Below the pieces are notes generated by a model. That model was not told where the DNA came from. It ran no database searches and was given only the letters and a program-made list of their open reading frames with translations. A stretch of 64,000 bases of DNA from Mytilus edulis (taxonomy: Eukaryota), in the NCBI RefSeq assembly GCF_963676685.1, contig NC_092346.1:18848001-18912000 (forward strand), read 5' to 3'. The position numbers were made by a program, and so were the translations under genes. This document shows positions 19,770 through 63,142 of the stretch, one piece after another (the first letter of the stretch is position 1; each line of letters opens with the position of its first letter).

Positions 19770-20948
19770 CTATAAACTACCAACACTATGAGGTGCATAT
19801 GTTTTGTAATAGCCATTATTGTCCGGTCCTGGCATATGTGATAAGTCTTTAGACATTGGCGGTAGCGCCATAGCATGGGGATTGTAACCTCCGTATCCCT
19901 GCATTTCGTACATTTTCATGTCCATTTTGGCACTGTCTGTGATTAAACTATTTATAGAGAACGGATGATTAAATGAGTGAGGATGATTTAAGTGTCCGGC
20001 GGGATGACCAGCGGGATGATTGTACCCCTGCGAAACTATATCATGCTGCATATGTCGAATGTTCGGGGTCATATCGTGGCGTTCATGTTGCTGGATTGGT
20101 GTTGGCGCACTGTGTTCATTACTTAATGGTTCCGATTTAGTTTCGGGAATCTCATGTCCTGACGGCACGTGATTTTGTGGTGGTGGTGGTGGCGGTGATG
20201 GGGAACATCCATCTCTACTGTCGGGTGACTTACAACTATCATCGTCATCTCCGGAACATGACTGCCTCATCATTTCTTTCTTTACACATTTGAAGCGTTT
20301 CTGTCGTCGTAGGTAACATCCATTTTCGAACATATTACCTGAGTCGGGATGAAGAGCCCAGTAGCTGCCTTTTCCAGGACGGTCGGGTGTTCTCGGAACT
20401 TTAACAAAACAGTCATTAAAAGATAAACTATGTCTGATAGAATTCTGCCATCTCTGTTGATTCTGACGGTAAAACGGAAATAAGTCCATAATAAACTGGT
20501 ATATTTCACTAAGCGTACACATTTTGTTCGGTGACTGTTGAATAGCCATAGTGATAAGTGATATGTAAGAATATGGCGGCTTTGCATGTGTATAACTTCT
20601 ACGATACGTTTTGTCCCGTGCCCTGTTAATAGCCTGGGCCCTGTTAAACGATTCCATTCTCATAGGGCTCGACATGCCATTCATTGGTGGTAGACTTCCC
20701 ATTCCGTTAACTGAAGCTATTGAATTCATAGAATTCATACCGGGTGGCATGGATGCTGCATGCATACCCATACCCATGCTGGACATTGCTTGTGGCGGCA
20801 TACCTCCCATGTTCGGAGGAGAATAGTTCATATTGCTCATAGCCATAGATCCCATAGACATTGTCCCATAACTGTTCATATTCGGCATTGATGTCATAGT
20901 ATATCCACTGCTGCAACTGGGGTCGTATGGAGACTTAGTTGACAACAT
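19770..20948 (-). CDS. FoxA: Forkhead box protein A (FoxA/HNF3/fork head), single coding exon, 392 aa from the ATG at 20948 (MLSTKSPYD...)
   Basis: Complete FoxA-type forkhead domain [104 protein letters not shown], Met/Ser/Gly-rich N-terminus, and C-terminal HPFSINSL (eh1-like region II). The ORF track starts at a non-ATG codon at 21026. The start at 20948 is preferred on similarity to invertebrate FoxA N-termini; an upstream in-frame ATG (MYEKQ, 20999) is also possible. Confidence 0.97.
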
Positions 20949-21029
20949 TGTCAAATAGTCTCCCGACTGCGGGCAATCCAAACTTTGTTTCTCGTACATA
21001 ATTACCAACAAATAGTTGTAAAACACTCT

Positions 21030-28924: not shown

Positions 28925-31084
28925 ATATTTAAAAAAAAAAAAAACGTCTGGAGTGTGAGCATAAACACAATCATTTTTTCATGAACAGATGAACCAGTTA
29001 TTTAAAAAAAAAACAACAAAAAAACAACGTAGCAAAGCATAAAATTCCCAAAACAGAAGCTTCGGACTGACACATCAGACTTCCTGACAACAATACAACT
29101 CAATGCTGTCACAGCTTAAATTCAATAGATATAAACGCATATAAAGAATAACAGAAATAACAAACACATAATTGAATATTTAAACTGACAAAACTTACTA
29201 TACTTCTTCCAACTAAAATCTGCGAAAAAAAGACATATTAACAAAAGGTACAGTGGCAAATATACCACATCTTCTTATTTTCATAAAGACAAAATAGAAC
29301 GAACAATACTGATCCAGAAAGCCTAAATGTGTATAACGTAGTTGGGGTAAACCAGTTTAAAGTGTGCGCAAAATGCCTACGTTAACTATATAAAAATGTA
29401 TCCAGAATGATGATATATTTGACCTAAGAACAACCATATTATCATTCTGAGAATGTGAAATATTTGATCTGCTGTTAGCCGCATCAGCATAAACGGCAAA
29501 TGTTGGCGGTTTGAACATTTGGACACGATACAAGAATTTTGTTTTTGGCCCAATGAGTTATCGTGGAAAGCAGTTAATGAAACGTTCTTAATTCACATTT
29601 TTGTACCTTTATATAAACTCTTATGGTCAAGAGGCAAGATGGTACTAATCTGATGTTTTACATGGCACCAATTTGGTAAGCTTTCCTGGTTTTCTTCTCA
29701 TGATAGTTTTTGCTTGTATCTTTTTTTTTCTTCAAAATAAATCATTAAAATAGAGACTTGAAGTATAATTTCCTCTTCACAGCAAATGAGCATTCCTCTT
29801 TCGTAATGAATTAGCAATGTAAAGAAATCTTAAGCTTTCAATTTGGGGATAAACTAGTAATTTCTCACGGTTAGTCTGACCGTAGCGCTCAAGCTGGTGA
29901 TTTGAAGTGCCGCGTTCGTTAAAACATCTTTATAATTCAAGCAGGTTTTTTCATTAGCATGGATCACATTTATAACACTTCTTAAGACATCTATTGTAAG
30001 GATATTCATCATGGTCTGTCGACAGTTGCTCGCTTTCTCTTCTCGGGTCAGACACGTTCAGGTGCAGCGTGTAAACCACTCCATCTTTTGGCAGATTTAA
30101 AACCTATTTTAAAACGCAAATTCTCAATGAAAGAATGGTTTCGATTTAATATTCCCTTTTTTCCCGTTTTAACAGATGGGTTGTTGAACTTAAGTTTTCA
30201 TTTAACGTTGTAAAACAAGAGCCATCAGTTCTCTAATTATTGCCGTATTTTGTTTTCTGGTCAGAAATCATTAAATAATCAGGAAAGAACATGCTAAAAT
30301 AACGTTCAAATTAAATCACTCCTTCATTGTTACAACACTCTAAATAGGATTAAGATTAAATTGAGCAGAAATGATTGCTTTATTTAGCATGAAATCAAAT
30401 CTGTGCGCCTCAGCGCACCAAGTGAAAACACTACCATCTTGTGGACGTATAGCGGCTTGTTCTCGCTGTGAAATAGACGAAAACTCTTGTTAAATTAATC
30501 GGAGGGAAACATGGGCGAGTTTTATTAAGTTTTTATTGAATATCATTTCATAAAACATGATCTTATAAGTGACTTTATACCTCAATCACATATCCCGTTA
30601 TATTATAAGTTACAGTTACAAAAGTGATCAGTAAAGGGAAAGACATTCACCTCCCTAAATTGAATAGTGTGTTTTTCCCTCAAATTTTCTGTGGTAATTT
30701 TATATAGACAAAACATAATTTGACTTTTAAGAGGCAAAGTTTCATGAATAAAAAAAATTGAAACAAAATGTGCTTTATAGTATTTTCCAATCCACAAAAA
30801 AAAAACACACAACATTTCGTCGTGTGAATATTACAATGGTGTATGTCCATTTTTTTCATAAATTGACTTATTGGTACTACTTGCATCCTCGTGTAATGAT
30901 CTATCTCCCTATACTTCTATATCTCTGAATCTTGCCCCATTTAGGCCTTAAAAAATACTCTTAGAATGATGTATCTCCACATCTTTAATATTTGAAAAAG
31001 TTATACTGATCTATGTTTTATCCAATGAAAATGTTTGAATTCTGGTCATATGACACAAGCTAGCAAATGGAAAAAGTTTGAAGC

Positions 31085-32138
31085 ATGACAGAAAAGTAAG
31101 TTATATTTTAGCTTTGTAATTCAATTATTTTTCTTAAAATCATTCTAATAATGAATTTATATTGTTTAAATGTGTATTAACTTTGTGATATAAACATATT
31201 TCTGAAGAAGGAAAAAGAGATTAAAGTATAAAGCATGATATATGGAGATACAACATTTTAAAACTTTCTTTTTTCAAGTTAATTTGGAGATACAACATTT
31301 TAAGACTTCCTTTTTTCAAGTTAATTTGGAGATACATCATTATAATCTTTTTTCTTGCACAAAAACACCAATTAAGAAATGATTATACATTTTGATCATT
31401 TACAGGGATGACTGTCATTTGCTGCCAATCTTGAACCTACCCGACGTTCCTCTGATAAGGATATTTTTCTTCTTAGATCTAGAAGATCTCGTGCTTGTAG
31501 TAAATAGGGTTTGTAAAAGATTTTACCACCTAATTAAATCAACACCTGTCTTGTGGAGAGTATTTGAATTTTATTGGCCTCAAGTTATAAAAGAAGAAGA
31601 CTTACCCTACATATTTAGACACTCAAAGAGCTTCAGAGTTTTCAATATTGGATATTGTACCTACTCAGGCCGTCTGTCTGTGTTTGATTATAGTTTCATT
31701 TCAAGTTTGAGCTGTGCAAGAAAACTCACATGGTTGAATTTAACTAGAACTTCAATATCAAGCACATGCTTTTTACAGTACCTTCCAAATCTTGAAATTC
31801 TTGATCTTTCAGAGTGTGAAAATCTGATTGACTGTGATTTTCATGTAGTATCTCAGTGTCATAAACTTCAAAACTTATATCTTTCGTTTGATAAAGTAAA
31901 CCCAAAGACAATCAAAGATATTGTTTCCTGTATACCTCAATTAGAAATTCTAGATATAAGTGGTATATTTTTGAAATTTTTTGAAGTGACATCAATTCTT
32001 GATCAGTGTTACTGGACACTTATGTCTATATACCTTAGTGTTGATTCATCTGTGAATGAAGAGGACTTACACAGGGAGATACACTTTAATTACACAGACC
32101 TTTCCTATCACATATATACACCAATATTTAATAATTAA
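31085..32138 (+). CDS. F-box/leucine-rich-repeat protein (FBXL-like), spliced: exon 1 31085..31095, exon 2 31406..32138, 247 aa
   Basis: F-box LNLPDVPLIRIFFFLDLEDLVLVVNRVCKRFYHLIKSTPVLWR followed by LRRs (LTWLNLTRTSI, LPNLEILDLSECENL, LQNLYLSFDKV, IPQLEILDISGI). ATG ACA GAA AA|gtaagt (donor 31096) joins in frame to tttacag|G GAT GAC (acceptor 31405), giving MTEKDDCHLLPILNLP. An in-frame TGA precedes this ATG. Confidence 0.85.
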
Positions 32139-32140
32139 CA

Positions 32141-34345
32141 ATGGATCCTAATAACTATAATATTGAGGAGATTTGTACAGTATCCAATGATCAAGAATTA
32201 GCTTCTATAATTCAAAACACTGATGACAATTGTACTATTATAATAGTCGATGAAAATAACAATTTTCAGTTTACAGATTCAACTGTAAACAATATATTTG
32301 AAACCAATTTAAATGAAAGTTTTGATTTAAATGAGGAACATAGCACGGAACATATTTATGCAAATGTACAGATTCTAAATCCTACAACCAGTTCTACATG
32401 TTCTAATGAATTGCAAAATGATTCAACTGATAATTTTATATATACTGGAGTAGCATTACCTAATGAAAACAAAACCATAGCTTCAAGAAATGCGGAAGAA
32501 ATTGATGAAGACCCAAGTCATCAAGGTGAAGGTAATGGCAATAATACAACAAGGAAACAAAATGTAAAAAATACAGAAGAGCAAAATGAAGACACAATAG
32601 AAGAACAAAACGTAGAGACAAATGAAAATGATGAAACGATGAGGGGTAGAAAAAGGAAAAGACAATCGGAATTATGGAAACAAAATCTAAGGAAAAGAAG
32701 ACGGCAGTCGGGTATGGAATATGTAAATACTAGAGGTAAAACACAGCGAAAGAGAGAAGTTAAACAAGGAACAAAGGACTGTAAAGGTGGATGCAGGTTT
32801 AAATGCAGTAAAAATATATCAGAAACAGAAAGGAACGCGATTTTTAAAACTTTTTGGTCATATAGCGATTCTGAAAAAAATGCATTTTATGGAAATAATA
32901 TTGAAAAGTTAAAGAAAGAAAGGAAGCGAACAAACAAAGAAATTTCAAGAAAACAATTTACATATAAATATCATTTACCTAAGGAGTGTAGTAAACTCCG
33001 TATTTGTAAAGAGTTTTTTCTTTCAACCTTAGATATAAGTGGCCGTAGGATTCAATGGTTTTTTGATAAAAAGTCTCCACAGTTTGAGGACAAAAGGGGA
33101 AGACATGTTAAGAGGAAAATATCAGATGAGTCTAAAGATAGAATCAGAAACCATATCAATTCATTTCCTCGAATGGACTCCCACTATTGTAGGTCTTCTG
33201 TAAAAAGACAATATCTTGATCCTTGTTTGTCGATAGCAAAAATGTATGAGCTTTATGTTTTAACATGTAATACAACAGATGTTACTCCAGAAAAATATCA
33301 TACATACAAAAACATATTTAATTTTGAATTTAATTTGGGTTTCCACACTCCCAAGAAAGACAGATGTGACCATTGTGAGGAGTACAAATCCAATAAATTG
33401 ATCAATCAAGTTGGTGAAGATTTGAAAATGAAGTATGAACTACACATAGCTGGAAAATCTAATACCAAAGTGGAAAGAGATAACGACAGAAGTTCCGACA
33501 AGGCAGTTCTTTGCTTTGACATGGAAAATGTTATAACCTGTCCAAGGGCAAATATTTCAATTTTTTTTTACAAAAGAAAATTGAATGTGTTCAACTTAAC
33601 TGGACATTTCTCGTTAAATAAATGTGCTTATAATGCAATTTGGCCAGAACATATAGCAGGCAGAGGTGCCAATGAAATTTCGAGTGCCTTATTAAAAATT
33701 TTAGAAAAAGTGCTAGAAGATTTTCCTTCTTTAGAAACCATAACGTTATGGTCGGACTCTTGCATACCCCAGAATCGTAACTCTATAGTTATTAGTGCAC
33801 TGCAGCATTTTATGAGAAGTGACAGATCATATTCACTTAAGTCTGTAGAACAAAAATTTTCTGAGCCAGGCCACTCGTCTATTCAAGAGGTTGACTGTGT
33901 ACACAGTCACATTGAGAAAGCATTGAATCTCAGCGAGATTTTTAGTCCTGTCAGTTTTTTGCGAATTCTGACAAAAGTTCGTAAAAGATCAATGAAAGTG
34001 ATTCAATTACAGCCTGAACACTTCTTTGATTTTCAGACAGCTAGTCGGACATTTAAATATAACTCTGTGCCCTTTACTAAGATTAAGTATTTAAAGTTAG
34101 AAGTTGAGAAGCCGTTACACGTTTTGTATAAGGTATCATTTTCTGATGAGAGTTTCAAAGAGGTTTCCATTGTTGTACAGAATACAAGAAAAAAACAGAA
34201 AACTGTTGTCATGCCAAAAGTTAATATGTTGACCAAATCAAACTTGTTGTCAAAAGAAAAAGTCAAAGATTTGAAAGATATGTTAAAGTATATGCCCCTT
34301 GATGACAGAAAGTATTATGAGACAGTTTTCAAGAGTTACAAGTAA
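32141..34345 (+). CDS. Sola1-like DDD transposase, 734 aa
   Basis: Motifs HINSFPRMDSHYCR, FNLGFHTPKKDRCDHC, CFDMENV (first Asp), YKRKLNVFNL, GRGANEISS, WSDSCIPQNRN (second Asp), GHSSIQEVDCVHSHIEK (third Asp). Acidic/Asn-rich N-terminus, basic NLS-like stretch RGRKRKR. Lies between the TIRs. Confidence 0.88.
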   Translation: MDPNNYNIEEICTVSNDQELASIIQNTDDNCTIIIVDENNNFQFTDSTVNNIFETNLNESFDLNEEHSTEHIYANVQILNPTTSSTCSNELQNDSTDNFIYTGVALPNENKTIASRNAEEIDEDPSHQGEGNGNNTTRKQNVKNTEEQNEDTIEEQNVETNENDETMRGRKRKRQSELWKQNLRKRRRQSGMEYVNTRGKTQRKREVKQGTKDCKGGCRFKCSKNISETERNAIFKTFWSYSDSEKNAFYGNNIEKLKKERKRTNKEISRKQFTYKYHLPKECSKLRICKEFFLSTLDISGRRIQWFFDKKSPQFEDKRGRHVKRKISDESKDRIRNHINSFPRMDSHYCRSSVKRQYLDPCLSIAKMYELYVLTCNTTDVTPEKYHTYKNIFNFEFNLGFHTPKKDRCDHCEEYKSNKLINQVGEDLKMKYELHIAGKSNTKVERDNDRSSDKAVLCFDMENVITCPRANISIFFYKRKLNVFNLTGHFSLNKCAYNAIWPEHIAGRGANEISSALLKILEKVLEDFPSLETITLWSDSCIPQNRNSIVISALQHFMRSDRSYSLKSVEQKFSEPGHSSIQEVDCVHSHIEKALNLSEIFSPVSFLRILTKVRKRSMKVIQLQPEHFFDFQTASRTFKYNSVPFTKIKYLKLEVEKPLHVLYKVSFSDESFKEVSIVVQNTRKKQKTVVMPKVNMLTKSNLLSKEKVKDLKDMLKYMPLDDRKYYETVFKSYK

Positions 34346-34497
34346 GCTTCAAGACGTTGACTCATTATTGATCACTATTGCATTGTCAGACAGTGTAGGA
34401 TGTTATCAGAATTATGGTCTGAAGGGACTTAAAGGATGCTGGACCTTTACATCTTAAATGTTATTTGTGTTTCATTTTTTGTTAAAAAAAAGTTTTG

Positions 34498-35035
34498 AAA
34501 AGAATTCAAAATTCTCATTCACTGGGTTGACTGTTAAATACTTTTTAGTTTTGAGAACTTATATTGAGTTGTTACATTGAATAAACCAACTGTTTGTGGT
34601 TATTGTTTTTTATATACCATTTGTTATTTGTTTATGCTAAATATACAAGAAGTATTTCTTTTATTTATTTTTGCCAATATCTTTCACAATTATGCTTTGT
34701 ATCTTGTATTGAAACAATTTTGTTTTGCGTTCAAATAACAGATTCTATCTTTATGACTTAACGTTTTCCAAAAGAATTCAAAATGCTCATTCACTGGGTT
34801 GACGGTTAAATGAGTTTTAGTTCTGAGAACTTATTGAGATGCTACATTGAATAAACCAAATGTTTGTGATTATTGTTTTTTATATATCACAAATTTTGTC
34901 ATTTGCTTTGCTAAATATACAAGAAGTATTTCTTTAATTTATTTTTGCCAATAATATCTTTCACGATTATGCTTTGTATTTCGTATTGAAACAATTTTGT
35001 TGTGCGTTCAAATTAAAGATTACTTAATGTTTTCC
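34498..35035 (+). repeat. ~270-bp tandem duplication in the 3' region of the transposon
   Basis: AAAAGAATTCAAAAT(T/G)CTCATTCACTGGGTTGAC starts at both 34498 and 34770 and the units stay collinear. Each unit contains an AATAAA (~34580, ~34850). Confidence 0.9.
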
Positions 35036-37042
35036 AGTTAATCATCATTATTGACAAATAATAGTGTCAGGAATAAACGATGATAAAACATATACATTAA
35101 AAATTATATTTTGTAATCCTTTAAAATCTTTTTCCTAATGCATTCATAGTTTATTGGTTTAATGTTATACTGTTTCAAGTCCAGTACCATTTTAATTGTT
35201 GTAAAATATGTGACCAAAAAGATAAAATTGTTCTATCTCCAAATAATTTTTTGTCTTTTTTATTTAAACGGAGTGTGTTTGTTATTATCGGTAACAATAA
35301 AACATCAACATTCATCAATTTGAAATACAAAAAGAATGTATCATCGTTCTTTCATTGCTCCTTGGTAGAAAAACAAGTTATCACTTTTTCAGATGGAGTT
35401 ATCTCCATTTTCAAAAATATGGACATAGACCACTATTAGATTCACACGACGATTTGTTCATTCCGTTCTAATGTCCTTGCAATCAGGAGTACAACATATA
35501 GAGATCAAAACCAAAGAAACATGGCCCAATAAAGCGGGTTTTATTCTCATTATGATATCTTTCAATATTCAATTTTATCTTGTCTTCTTATATATATTTT
35601 GTATTGTGAAATAAATATTGGCATTGAAATTCACTCCAATTTCAAGTTATTTAATATTGTTGACTATTACCACAATAAACAAGCTGTATGTTGACAATGT
35701 AATACCTTTTCATGTGCGGTCCTTTTGTCCGCCATGTTTGCTTACAAGTGGAGCAGAAAAGAACGGTAAACACATTCTACATCAAGTCGATATACTCTCA
35801 CAATTAAAGTTACCAGACTTGTCATGTAATGAGAAGACTATGTAAATATTCGTCATTATACAGAGAAAAAAAAACATGTTCTACATCCCGTAAGCGTTCT
35901 TCTTCAAGTCGACATGAAATAAACATTTGCATATCAATTTTTTCCTAACTCAGTTCAAATACACTCAATTCTATTTGCTTGAATAGGTCAATAAGAAAAA
36001 GGAAAATAATATTTAATTTTGTGTACATATTAAAAATTACATTAAATATCATGATACGAAACAAGTAACTACAATTACATTCATATCCGTCAGTCATATT
36101 ATAATAATGCACAACACACTTGAGTGTATAAGTAGTTAAAAATATGTGTTAGAATTATAAAAAAAAATATTGATGTATATTTTTGTATATATTTACTTAA
36201 AATTTGACAAATTCTTAACGAGGGAAGATACTTAAGGTAGAATTCCAAGTTCTTTTTGTATCAAACAAAAATGATATTTGAAGATTGCGCCTTCGGTTGG
36301 CTTTAATCTTGTTGACAGCTTTAATTACTTTATTGCTGAAATAAACGAATAATAAACAATCTGCGACGGTGTGGAGTTTTTTCTTTGCATCACGAAATGG
36401 TTTGTGGAAAGTTTGTCAACACGAATAAATCTTGCTGAGGAGTATCTCTATTCCTTTATGGCGGCGACGAGAATTCTTTAGATCTCATTATCTGGTGTTG
36501 TTAACAGTGTGATTGATGCTCAACTAAACTGTTTAATTAAATTTAAATATTTCTGCAGATTAAACGCCAACCAAAACAGAAATTAAAGCCAAAGCGTTAT
36601 TGTCTCATTATTGGAATTAATCAGGATTTTATTAAAATATAAATATCTACAAGAGTTTTTATCCTCCGCCGGCCATTCTGTTCTATATAAAACCATTTCA
36701 GCCATTTGATTAATATGGTGTCTGCATTATAAAAATCCCCAATGTAAATATGTGAAAACTGTCCGATAAGCACTGCAATATGCATTACAGATCGAGGAAT
36801 AATTTTTATGTTTGTTTTCTGATGAAATACTACGAGCTTTAGGAAAACAATTATGATATAAATTCGTGACACGTGCTATGCAAAATCATGGACGTTGTGT
36901 TGTAACAGTAAATTTGTCCAATAACAAAAACAGTTGCTTTAGGACCATGTGGCAAAATTAGGTCCAGATTGTCTAATCTTGATTTAGACTATTGATATGC
37001 ATTTGCCTCTAATTTTCGAAATCTATATAAAAAAAAAGATCA

Positions 37043-59208: not shown

Positions 59209-59649
59209 CTGTAAAATAGACATTTAGGTTTTTATTAGAAACATTTGAGGAAAATACTGACGAGTGAAAGATTTTAGCTTTATCAATAAAATTAAGGCGA
59301 AGATACCACGCTAATATTCCCAAATCAAAAATTGACAACGCCTCAGAAAAAGAAAAACAACGAACACGACGAAAAACTTCCACAAAACACTAAACAGAAA
59401 AATCAAGATTTGACAATAAGTGATCACACAGGTTATATATAAGACAACATTTCAGTGGTTCTCTTTTTATGATGTCTCTTTGGTACCTCATAAAATAAAC
59501 TACAAATTATATATTTGTTTTTAACATTGTCTCGGACATGTACATGAACGTTAAAAACCAAATATTTGAAAGCGATGAATGTATATAAACATTGAAATAG
59601 TGAAGCGCTGAATGAGTAAAAAGAACCACAGTATTTTAAACTTATTTAC

Positions 59650-61595
59650 CTTGTCTACAATATTCTCATTGTCATCAATAAATTCTTGAAAAGAAAATAC
59701 AGGATTATCTGAGTGGGTATATACTGAGCTGGAATATGGCTCACTGTCCTTATATTTTGTGACTGCTAGTTGGTACTGGGACCAGCTCACAGCTGGGTTA
59801 TTTCCGTCTTTTGGTGGTCTCATAAACTTAGTCATCCCTTTATTTATCAATTTGTAACCAGGGGAGTTTCCAAATTTATCTTTTTTGTTATTGTTTACAA
59901 AAGTCAGTACTTTCGGATAATCGAAGTTGAACTTATAGGCCGCCTCAAGTTCCGTCTGTTTCAATCTTTTTATGAATCTATTTTGAACAATTGTAGAACC
60001 TGGTTTTTTGTGACATACGTTTTCCACAATATCCGGTTCTATGTCGACAGTTTGAAATCTGTTGCTTGTACCTTTGATATCAAGGTCAATTTTGAAATTA
60101 AACAAATGCTGGTGTAATGGCGACATCAGATTTTTATCAACTTGAAAACTGTACGGGTTGTCATGTGTATTCCATGAACTTGTCACTATTCCAGTTGGTG
60201 TTATTTTAACTTCTATGGCGCCATTTTGATAAAATATAAAATCAATGATATAGTCATAAATGTCAATCGTAGGAATGGTTCTGACGATCAAAACTACATT
60301 TGCAACTCCTTCATAAAATCGATGGATATATCGAAAGTAACCGTTATGGCGACGGAGTGGCATTCCAGTATTGTGCTCAAATATACAGAATGCACGCTCA
60401 TTAGTCAAAGGTTCATCTTGTGTGTCAACCTTAAAAGATGAACTTATAAAAGTGGCATCATTTGGACAATCAACACAAGGATGTAAATATTTTGCCCTCG
60501 AACCAATCTTATACATAGAGTCTAAGTAATTAAGTACATGTTCCTGTGGCTTATCTCCGGAATAAAAATTGGCTAGTTCTTGCAGGCTTATTTCATAAGC
60601 AATACGGTCACCTTTGTAGCGAATATCATATAGCCGTGGTCCGTAGAATACAGACATCCCGATATTAAATTCCCAGTACGAATATGACACGTGTCTGTCG
60701 TTGATATTGTAACGTACACCATCTGGAGATACTTGTGATGGGTCTTTTAGAGGTATTTTAAACGATGGTTCGCCTCTAGAACTGATAGTCTTGTTGTTTT
60801 TCTCAGCGTTTGTTGGAAAGGGAATTTTATTGATATATTCCTTGTATGTATTATAGTATGGAACTATTTCCTCCAGGCTATTAAACAATAATCCATTAAA
60901 CCAAATCTTGATTATAGTATTATTACCGTTATTATCTACTTCTCGGAGTACTGCAAAATCTATGGGCCGTAATAAGAAATATTCTGTGAATTGATACAAC
61001 CAACTAAACCACAAACGTTTCCTGACACCAGACAATGGAGTCGTCAATTGGCTGTTGAGATTAAAAACCAAACAGCGATCACCACAGTTGACCAAACGAC
61101 CACCATATAATTCATTTAGTATTTTTCCTACAACTTTATCAATTTGTTCTAGCAATGGCGTGAGATTGTAATCAAAAACGTCAATAGGACGATCAATAAA
61201 TGGAATAGATTTTGGTAGGTAAGGAACATGCCGATAACCAGTCGGGTTTGGTAAAGGACTCACAATAATCTCTATAACATCTGGAGTGGAGATACCGCCT
61301 CGAAGAATCATTACACGGGCTTCACGTTTAGGCTGAACACAATGTGTATCTAAATGTTTCAATACGTCTCTTTTTGGTGGCAAAAATATTTCAGAACTGA
61401 AAATATAGTTTGAATTAATTGCTGCTTTATCTGCGGTTGTAAGGTTTAAATCTGAACGGTTATAAAGGTAATCAAGAATTCCCGCAATTTCCTTTTTCGT
61501 TAAATCACGAAATACAGATGGTTTACTACTTTCCCTCAAGTTAACATTACCATACAATCTTGATTTCCGAGTACACACTAGAATGTTTTTCTTTG
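59650..61595 (-). CDS. Copper-containing amine oxidase (AOC/diamine-oxidase-like), large internal exon
   Basis: VFRDLTKKEI, RIAYEISLQE, catalytic Asp in NYLDS, CIFEHNTGMPLRRH, TPQ region TIDIYDYIIDFIFYQNGAIEV, Cu-ligand HQH. Acceptor ttttttaacag| at 61596, donor AAG|gtaaat at 59649. The upstream exon(s) carrying the start codon and signal/anchor were not identified. Confidence 0.92.
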
Positions 61596-63142
61596 CTGTT
61601 AAAAAAGAGAAAACTATGATAAAGATCAGAAACATTTACAATTTGGGGTCAAATAGTAACAGAAATGTATTTCAAAATTTCCGATTCATATGAGTTATAA
61701 CCATGGAATATGTAACAACTAAGACATTTTTTCTCATATGCATTTCAATTCCATTTGCATGGAGTTTCATTCCACAAATGAAAAAAATTTGTTATATGAA
61801 AAACGATGATTGATCATGGAGTCGAGATCATAAAACATTTTTTTAATATATCGATAAGTTCAAATTGTTGTTTGAGTCCTAATCATTAGTGTTAAGGAGG
61901 ATCAGATGTATCTTTCCTTTAACAAATAGCAGAACACAATCGGTTTTGATCTTTAATAAAATATACAAGTTTTGAGACAGGAGCGAAATTCATTTGCAAG
62001 TCGTTTCTTTAAGATGACGAAAATCATATATTATGTCCCATTTTTTCGACTTTTAAACAAAAAATACCTAACATTATTTTTATTCATTTTATTTTTCAAC
62101 TTTGCCGTTTAGAAATGTGTTCTAGGTAATTTTCTTTTTTTTCTGTATTTACATCATAAAAATTATCTTTTCATTCAGTTTTCTGTTAATCAAATACTAT
62201 TCGTTTTTCCATGTATAATATTAACAAAATTTTACACACAACCTGCAGCTAACAAAACCTCCATGATTGTTGCTATTTATCATATTTTTGAAAAAAGCAA
62301 AAATGGGTTTGAACATTAATAGCTAAATAAACTTAAGACCAGCTTTGCCTGTGAAAGTTGGAATTCAAGCTTCTTTTTTTTTTTTTTTTATACTAAAAGG
62401 CTTATGCAACAAGCGTATACTCCTTACTGAAATACTAAGTTTAAATTTAAAATTTCCATCCTAAAATGTTTGATGAGTTGTTTTTCATCTTCTTGTTATT
62501 TTTAATAAAAATTGAACTAAATTTTACTCTTCTACGTCTAAAAGTGCTCTAAATCAATTTTGGCACACTTAATAATTACGATGCAAAAGAAGATACTATA
62601 ATGTTTCACAATTGTTGTGACAGAGGGTAATTTGTTGTTATTGTATTCTGTATACCATTGTATTCACAAAGGTTATCGGAATAAACTTATTTTATCTATC
62701 ACTTGACGTTCGCAGGTAGGTGCATACATTTATTTGCTCTTCAAAAGTAAAGTACATTTGTACTTGCCTGACTTGGACATCCATTTGTAAAATAGATGGT
62801 TACATTTCCTTCCATTTCCCTGAAAAAAATATTTGAATCATTTATTTTATATAAATGTTTTCATTGATCATCCGAATGCTTTATCCATTTACTTAATTAA
62901 TCCTCGCTTTCACTTTTGTTCTATGATCAGTGTTATAAAACAGCAGAAAAAGGATTAAAACACCAAGCATTTTGTTGTTTATGTTGTCTGATATCACACG
63001 AATAATGGTGACTTGTTTGTACTTGTTTTTAATAGAATTAAAGTGGTACCTTGCAGGTCATGGATAATTTTCGATTATTAATTTTAACAAAAATGTTAGT
63101 GGGTGTATATTGTTATCAAATGTACCAGGATTATAATTTAAT

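Follow-up and report, generated by a model that had tools for sequence, protein, structure and literature searches.

A transposon in a 64,000-nt stretch of the Mytilus edulis genome (contig NC_092346.1, positions 18,848,001 to 18,912,000; hereafter the window, whose positions serve as coordinates throughout) was found to carry, besides its transposase gene, a second gene that encodes an F-box/leucine-rich-repeat (LRR) protein. The element is a complete and recently mobile transposon, its features fit the Sola1 type, and we class it as a Sola1 element whose conserved accessory gene is without precedent in the papers searched. The F-box/LRR gene (FB) lies directly upstream of the transposase gene (TP, a name used here for the gene and its protein), recurs beside TP in diverged copies and is under purifying selection equal to that on TP. 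We put at about 0.6 the probability that the element represents a two-gene sublineage in which the Skp2-like FB protein would act, for the benefit of the element, as an adaptor of SCF (Skp1-Cul1) ubiquitin ligases.

A complete and recently mobile element

The transposon spans 30818-35451 (+ strand, 4634 bp) and is enclosed by the target-site duplication (TSD) ATTT at 30814-30817, the identical 4 nt following the right end at 35452-35455. Its two 44-nt terminal inverted repeats (TIRs), which are ~80% complementary to each other, are located at 30818-30861 (+), where the element begins CGTCGTGTGAAT and the block TGGTGTATGTCCATTTT starts from position 20, and at 35408-35451 (-), with the terminus ...ATTCACACGACG. 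The 5' TIR is conserved in the copies on contigs C2 and C1. A preliminary description of this DNA, made from the letters alone, had proposed TIRs, an ATTT TSD, an F-box/LRR open reading frame (ORF) and an ORF for a transposase with a catalytic triad of three aspartates (DDD), and all four were found where it had placed them.

Contigs of four public runs (three coded organism labels) matched the element at 95-100% identity, and the matches stopped exactly at 30812-30817 and 35453-35457, to be followed by four different flanks. Since these exact breaks at the TIR ends lead into differing flanks, the element occupies other sites in other individuals or species. Moreover, a second copy on contig C8 was 99.45% identical and had lost the first 818 bp, a 1.6-kb non-autonomous family with the same termini was present in the assembly, and an internal-deletion derivative (31191 joined to 34457) was found in one run. 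Perfect 4-bp duplications flanked eight related non-autonomous copies, with AATT, AAAT, ATAT, ACTT (twice) and AAGT (twice) among them.

The target sites looked palindromic past the 4-bp duplication, often with A[C/T] before and G[T/N] after it (AC-ATTT-GT in the window, at 30812-30817 and 35452-35457; loci L022-L030 were compared), and the left flank ACATTT was common to three independent insertions, namely those of the window, of locus L009 and of run X1. The copy in run X4 has single-T insertions in the TP ORF, at window 33013 and 33058; the TP of that copy would be frameshifted, unless these are contig errors.

FB and TP are retained together under purifying selection

In six-frame searches FB was found directly upstream of TP, on the same strand, at six or more diverged loci of this genome (at least six). 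Identities to the window copy (FB/TP) were 99%/99% at C8:84.09 Mb, 65%/66% at C2:42.36 Mb, 78%/58% at the decayed copy at C1:4.01 Mb, 49%/63% at C11:69.59 Mb (C11a, which belongs to the C2 subfamily), 47%/60% at C7:56.64 Mb and 43%/48% at C11:34.29 Mb (C11b), and traces of the pair were detected at C2:46.98 Mb and C7:90.00 Mb. Outside this genome, the C-terminal part of FB was found ~200 nt upstream of a TP 42-45% identical on metagenome contig L078, while the Tegillarca granosa protein KAJ8302248 (LOW QUALITY) comprises a kinase, FB (466-690, 36%) and the TP N-terminus (707-963, 34-37%). Both the FB-like protein P0137 and the TP relative P0014 come from an ENA contig of 3733 bp and, on this circumstantial ground, may share one contig; a homologue search with the Tegillarca FB+TP region returned only the query itself.

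Selection was measured by Nei-Gojobori counts of each copy against the window copy. For the C2 copy, the proportions of differing nonsynonymous (pN) and synonymous (pS) sites were 0.194 and 0.779 in FB, and 0.189 and 0.795 in TP; for FB they were 0.345 and 0.827 in the C7 copy, and 0.382 and 0.800 in C11b. Synonymous sites have reached saturation, unlike replacement sites, and the constraint on FB is as strong as that on TP. The two also co-diverge, with a Spearman rho of 0.73 between FB and TP pairwise identities across copies (the pairs being non-independent). Thus the earlier proposal that the F-box gene is part of the element is borne out by its position next to TP in the diverged copies here, in L078 and in Tegillarca; confinement to this one copy and neutral evolution, which would each have spoken for a chance capture, both fail.

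More distant TP relatives presented a different picture. Eighty metagenome loci contain TP relatives at 27-46% identity, and the upstream sequence exceeds 1.5 kb at many of them; an FB-like ORF was found at L078 and was absent from the other 79, and no other upstream ORF recurs among those 80 loci; the distant TP lineages of this genome (~30-35% identity, several of them intact) likewise have no FB match nearby. Therefore FB is dispensable for Sola1 transposition in general. As judged from the copies compared, FB is an accessory gene gained by one sublineage, and neither a general feature of Sola1 nor a one-off capture. Its presence in both Mytilida and Arcida points to either an old acquisition or horizontal transfer, and horizontal transfer has been proposed for Sola1 (PMC3845634).

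FB is spliced and adjoins TP

ORF1 (31392-32138, +) is a 248-codon open frame without an in-frame ATG near its start and with ttacAG before it. The coding part of a first exon (31085-31095, +) reads ATGACAGAAAA, that is M T E K-, and is followed by the donor GTAAGT; a 310-nt intron (31096-31405, +; GT...ttacAG) separates it from the second exon (31406-32138, +), which includes the TAA stop and encodes the F-box (31428-31559) and ~7 LRRs (~31584-32114). The sequence ATGACAGAAAA|GTAAGT (31085-31101) joins in frame to G-GAT-GAC at 31406 to give MTEKDDCHLLP. The motif CATGACAGAAA[A/T]GTAAGT is kept in the C2 and C1 copies, which are 70-76% identical there and differ in intron sequence and length, and joining the exons of the C2 copy yields MTEIDGYRWFPIEDLPDV. 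Annotated proteins begin alike (MTEK/MTEI, running into exon 2), with MTEKDNCHLLPILDLPDV... in M. coruscus and MTEIDGYRWFPIEDLPDV... in M. edulis. Therefore the claim of two uninterrupted genes applies just to the main coding exons: ORF1 lacks an ATG in frame, and FB is a spliced gene of two exons.

Run X4 yielded a contig of 2173 nt that opens with 28 foreign letters, matches window 31404-33546 from there on, and continues unbroken through the FB ORF and 1.4 kb into the TP ORF. The foreign letters are unique in the genome, at C4:29808564-29808591, where they are trailed by AG (to 29808593) and then GT (to 29808595; ...GCAGGAAG|GT). Depth in this run was near zero from ~31031 and zero across the intron bin 31208-31384. 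The joint reads as a host-exon donor (AG|GT) spliced to the FB acceptor, a site that had been predicted beforehand. Thus the contig, a single one from a run whose RNA label is a guess, is good evidence of splicing at the FB acceptor and of a single RNA with both ORFs. The C4 joint itself would mean that another individual or species makes a chimeric transcript of host and transposon.

FB and TP meet at TAA-CA-ATG (32136-32143, +), with the TP ATG in the context ACAATGG, 2 nt past the FB stop. Stop and start overlap as ATGA in the C2/C11a subfamily, and the gap is ~84 nt in C11b and ~200 nt in L078. FB and TP are probably on one transcript. From such a bicistronic RNA TP would most economically be translated by termination-reinitiation, or it could be made from an alternatively spliced RNA; a splice from the exon-1 donor to ttacacAG at 32097/32098 may leave, as predicted from the sequence, a 15-codon upstream ORF whose end lies 9 nt short of the TP ATG. 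An FB-TP fusion by programmed frameshifting was also considered and rejected as unlikely, because ahead of its ATG the TP frame stays open through no more than 2-4 codons. LINE-1 (ORF1/ORF2) and some viruses have two ORFs per RNA with a stop-start junction, and FB-TP resembles LINE-1 and the viral UAAUG/AUGA bicistronic RNAs in having two ORFs with a minimal or overlapping junction, a likeness known here from sequence only.

The FB protein and its family

The FB protein has ~247 aa and ~7 LRRs. ORF1 matched PF12937 (F-box-like) at 35.9 bits (cut-off 24.3) and PF00646 (F-box) at 25.2 bits (cut-off 20.5), and its Pfam LRR matches were just under the cut-off. An AlphaFold2 model (predicted local distance difference test score, pLDDT, 82) contained an LRR arc of alternating strand/helix repeats at >90 and an F-box at lower confidence, as is expected when an F-box is modelled without Skp1. 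SKP2, FBXL2 and FBXL17 were the top Foldseek matches, with COI1 and TIR1 also found, and the best sequence match in the PDB was SKP2 (8e-6), aligned to the SKP2 F-box. These three are cellular F-box/LRR substrate receptors of SCF, which share with FB an N-terminal F-box followed by an LRR arc and are its best matches in sequence and fold; they differ from it in that FB, at 14-21% identity, is much smaller, transposon-encoded and multi-copy, and its SCF role is one that we infer.

The best conserved part of the protein was the signature LPd..l..Il....l..Ll..v.r.Ckr......LW, which is conserved across 64 family members. Searched against 1.84 billion representative proteins, the FB profile gave 77 matches below 1e-30, ~60 of them clusters of 200-250-aa proteins collinear with full-length FB at 28-45% identity; matches to long proteins covered the repeat region only. 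A language-model atlas returned only generic F-box/LRR clusters for FB.

FB-family genes were also encountered elsewhere in the genome. A second gene of the family, a 236-aa open frame (~1e-40 to 1e-55 against family profiles) with a TTTTCAG acceptor just before the F-box, is present in at least 13 intact copies (L049-L059, e.g. C1:102837830-102838492, C2:73776600-73777262 and C9:68743845-68744507), 11 of which are 99.3-99.9% identical over more than 3.6 kb with no transposase match nearby; by these alignments it is a young multi-copy repeat that carries an F-box gene only. A third group comprises frames of 242-258 aa, mostly open (~1e-36 against the family profile), at C4:11699492-11700184, C2:100503470-100504162, C8:85810762-85811454, C11:51798109-51798801, C11:52425831-52426523 and C11:5274863-5275555, with no adjacent transposase match. 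In addition, a 157-bp segment of the LRR-coding part of FB (window 31663-31819) is repeated on contig C11, where at least five loci match it at 85-87% identity (L013-L017, L037-L041), including the inverted pair C11:5599481-5599637/5602379-5602535 and C11:8169294, 27080650 and 37700835, and apparently belongs to another repeat.

The transposase and the assignment to Sola1

TP is an uninterrupted ORF of 734 aa (32141-34345, +), with an RNase H-like core at ~33506-33931 (+). The residues D460 (33518-33520), D539 (33755-33757) and D585 (33893-33895) are invariant across 36 relatives and are placed on strand 1, after strand 4 and on the next helix of the core predicted by AlphaFold2 (pLDDT 77, core >90). 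The best fold matches were TnsB, IstA and retroviral integrases. TP itself had no Pfam match; its 138 relatives are found in molluscs and insects, and some of them contain DUF7869. The best named match was a Mytilus galloprovincialis protein (99% identical), an NCBI gene model has the 734-aa TP on its own, and a scan of viral contigs with the TP alignment gave no match.

An AWWT/AWDT duplication is described as a hallmark of Sola1 transposons (PMC3845634), and such 4-bp A..T duplications were observed here, as ATTT in the window and as ANNT-type in related copies. The TIRs of Sola1_NA end in ...AAAGTGGTGTAAGTCCATTTT (PMC3845634) and the window TIR reads ...ACAATGGTGTATGTCCATTTTT, the block beginning at position 20 in both. 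The TIR block TGGTGTA(T/A)GTCCATTTT at position 20 also occurs in the Sola1_NA of Bombyx, Rhodnius and Heliconius (compared with PMC3845634), while the extreme termini differ, being CGTCGT in the window element and GGACCG in Sola1_NA. Curated bivalve Sola1 elements have a mean length of 5445 bp (PMC10294476). Thus the element fits Sola1 by TSD, TIR architecture, DDD fold and size; the TSD type, the repeat architecture and the RNase H-like DDD core agree with its earlier designation as an intact Sola1-like transposon. Like the Sola1 elements outlined in the published accounts consulted (Bao et al. 2009, as cited in PMC3845634; PMC10294476), it is a TIR-bounded cut-and-paste element with a 4-bp A..T duplication, a similar TIR-internal block and a DDD transposase (~630-730 aa in Sola1), the bivalve Sola1 elements being unusually long. 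Those accounts mention a transposase only, whereas the window sublineage adds a conserved spliced F-box/LRR gene upstream.

Proposed function of FB and alternative explanations

In the mechanism that we propose, the F-box of FB would dock on host Skp1-Cul1, as F-box/LRR proteins do in general, and the LRR arc would recruit a protein substrate to Cul1-Rbx1 for ubiquitination, to the benefit of the element. The likeliest substrate would be a host factor that restrains transposition, a possibility to which we give appreciable weight, well short of even odds, by analogy with polerovirus P0, Agrobacterium VirF and VANC; TP itself, the turnover of which would then be controlled, is the second option and an improbable one, and the remainder falls to a non-SCF cofactor role of FB or something else. 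Of much the same weight as a host-factor substrate is the idea of a counter-defence in its full form, in which a Sola1 lineage would encode an SCF receptor that sends a host protein of transposon control (from the piRNA pathway, chromatin or DNA repair, for example) to the proteasome, would long have been kept in bivalves and has spun off FB-only repeats.

F-box proteins of parasites include polerovirus P0, which targets AGO1, Agrobacterium VirF and the poxvirus ankyrin/PRANC proteins. If FB is an SCF adaptor, it would resemble them as a parasite's own F-box adaptor that redirects host SCF; the likeness drawn here is one of role, and the carriers are viruses or a bacterium in those cases and an animal cut-and-paste transposon in this one. 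We know of very few element-encoded factors that act on host control, plant VANDAL VANC among them. VANC of Arabidopsis VANDAL21, an anti-silencing factor (Fu et al. 2013, cited in PMC13534243), is an accessory protein of a DNA transposon directed against host control and supplies the functional analogy behind the favored hypothesis; VANC differs in that it acts on DNA methylation and does not belong to the F-box proteins, and an anti-silencing role of FB would be an analogy only.

Several observations weigh against the proposal of a Sola1-type element with an SCF-adaptor gene: i) Sola1 membership was set by published descriptions and not by Repbase transposase sequences; ii) the joint between FB's own exons 1 and 2 was not seen in four runs, three of which look like DNA or unspliced RNA; iii) the sole junction seen has a host exon as donor and comes from the run with the guessed RNA label, and the evidence for FB expression consists of this one chimeric contig and gene models; iv) FB is absent at 79 of the 80 more distant TP relatives; v) two further multi-copy repeats of this genome contain FB-family genes that have no TP close by, and therefore FB function may not be tied to this TP. 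A prediction of the FB+TP complex scored 0.01, which is evidence neither way.

That last prediction bears equally on the alternative that FB is an SCF adaptor or binding partner for TP itself, acting in TP turnover or localization as self-regulation rather than attack on the host. Such a role would suit the tight coupling of the genes (TAA-CA-ATG in the window, overlapping ATGA in the sister subfamily) and their co-divergence, and two-protein DNA transposons such as PIF/Harbinger, with a transposase and a Myb-like partner, offer a precedent; however, linkage alone predicts co-divergence, the spacing between FB and TP is not kept in the distant copies C11b and L078, and FB-family genes thrive in repeats without TP nearby, so that we hold self-regulation to be unlikely, though the most credible of the alternatives. 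That FB is instead a chance passenger without a role, a host FBXL gene or fragment captured once in the manner of a Pack-MULE or Helitron, is the least credible of all. DNA transposons commonly capture genes, most TP relatives lack FB and this assembly holds a single fully intact copy, but the pair is retained at the diverged loci, in L078 and in Tegillarca, FB has the same low pN (0.19) against a saturated pS (0.78) as TP, conservation extends to exon 1 with its donor and to the F-box signature, and close FB relatives are all short (~230 aa), no long host FBXL having been found as a source. Capture in a single copy was rejected, and the passenger explanation is largely refuted by recurrence, constraint and the conserved exon 1, donor and signature.

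Public gene models raise the further alternative that FB and TP form one F-box-LRR-transposase protein by splicing or recoding, since FB-TP fusions are modelled in M. coruscus (P0122, P0135), M. edulis (P0136) and T. granosa (P0138). Yet the three Mytilus models place the join at three different points, the one from Tegillarca carries a LOW QUALITY flag, FB has a conserved C-terminus (NYxDLxYxIY) and stop, the TP frame closes just upstream of its ATG, the X4 contig is collinear across the junction and NCBI models TP alone; a fusion is thus very improbable, and the fused models are likely annotation artefacts of this transposon family. These four models are named 'F-box domain-containing protein' or 'serine/threonine protein kinase', and in Tegillarca a kinase is fused as well. 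Membership outside Sola1, in another or an undescribed DDD/DDE superfamily, is similarly far-fetched, if anything slightly more so: the assignment was made without direct comparison with Repbase Sola1 transposases, Pfam gives only DUF7869, and that for TP relatives, and the fold matches are generic RNase H-like transposases and integrases, but the 4-bp A..T duplications are those of Sola1, the TIR block is common with published Sola1_NA, the triad is DDD and not DDE, and the size fits the curated bivalve elements.

Other features of the element and its neighborhood

The motif GGAGATAsAwCA was counted six times in the element, whereas 0.3 would be expected over the entire window; it sits at both subtermini and in the FB intron, where a 42-bp tandem repeat (31243-31345) contains three GGAGATAC motifs. 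Two subterminal copies (30897-30908 and 30967-30978, -) are conserved in the C2 and C1 copies, and a motif scan located a subterminal GGAGATAGAACA near the 3' end (35229-35240, -). These motifs are candidate TP-binding sites. The 3' non-coding region (34489-35021, +) contains two direct repeats of ~260 bp (34489-34744 and 34760-35021, 87% identical by self-BLAST), each with an AATAAA (34580-34585 and 34850-34855).

The insertion lies between two host genes. A forkhead gene of FoxA/HNF3 type (window 19770-21026, -; Forkhead 7e-38, Forkhead_N, HNF_C) has its 5' end ~9.8 kb from the transposon, and the other gene encodes a copper amine oxidase (window 59551-61635, -; 4e-90).

Relation to known elements and significance

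Animal cut-and-paste transposons are, to our knowledge, generally thought to carry a transposase only. Two-gene DNA transposons include PIF/Harbinger (transposase and a Myb-like protein), MuDR (mudrA/mudrB) and CACTA, which resemble the element described here in that a second element-encoded protein is conserved with the transposase; their partner is DNA-binding, whereas here it is an F-box/LRR protein with a ubiquitin-ligase adaptor fold, encoded upstream at a near-zero gap. The preliminary description had known of no Sola element with F-box cargo, and none, nor any DNA transposon with an intact F-box gene, is described in the papers searched, unpublished Repbase/Dfam annotation lying outside that search. 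A survey of bivalve transposable elements with eight curated Sola1 consensus sequences makes no mention of an F-box (PMC10294476). In nematodes, host F-box genes captured the helix-turn-helix domain of Tc1/mariner (PMC12062965). Drosophila telomeric retrotransposons hold F-box gene fragments of 140-235 bp (PMC13534243) and so resemble the window element in having F-box gene sequence within a transposable element; there the sequences are host-gene fragments in retrotransposons, whereas FB is a whole coding gene, kept under selection, within a DNA transposon.

Gene predictors currently report FB genes as host 'F-box domain-containing proteins' or as kinase/transposase fusions, which matters for annotation. 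The system is tractable, as the element is intact and polymorphic in Mytilus and FB is small and folds confidently. FB is thus a concrete and testable candidate for the hijacking of a ubiquitin ligase by a transposon, the alternative being ligase-based self-regulation; if true, the former would be a case of transposon-encoded counter-defence through ubiquitin-ligase hijacking in an animal.

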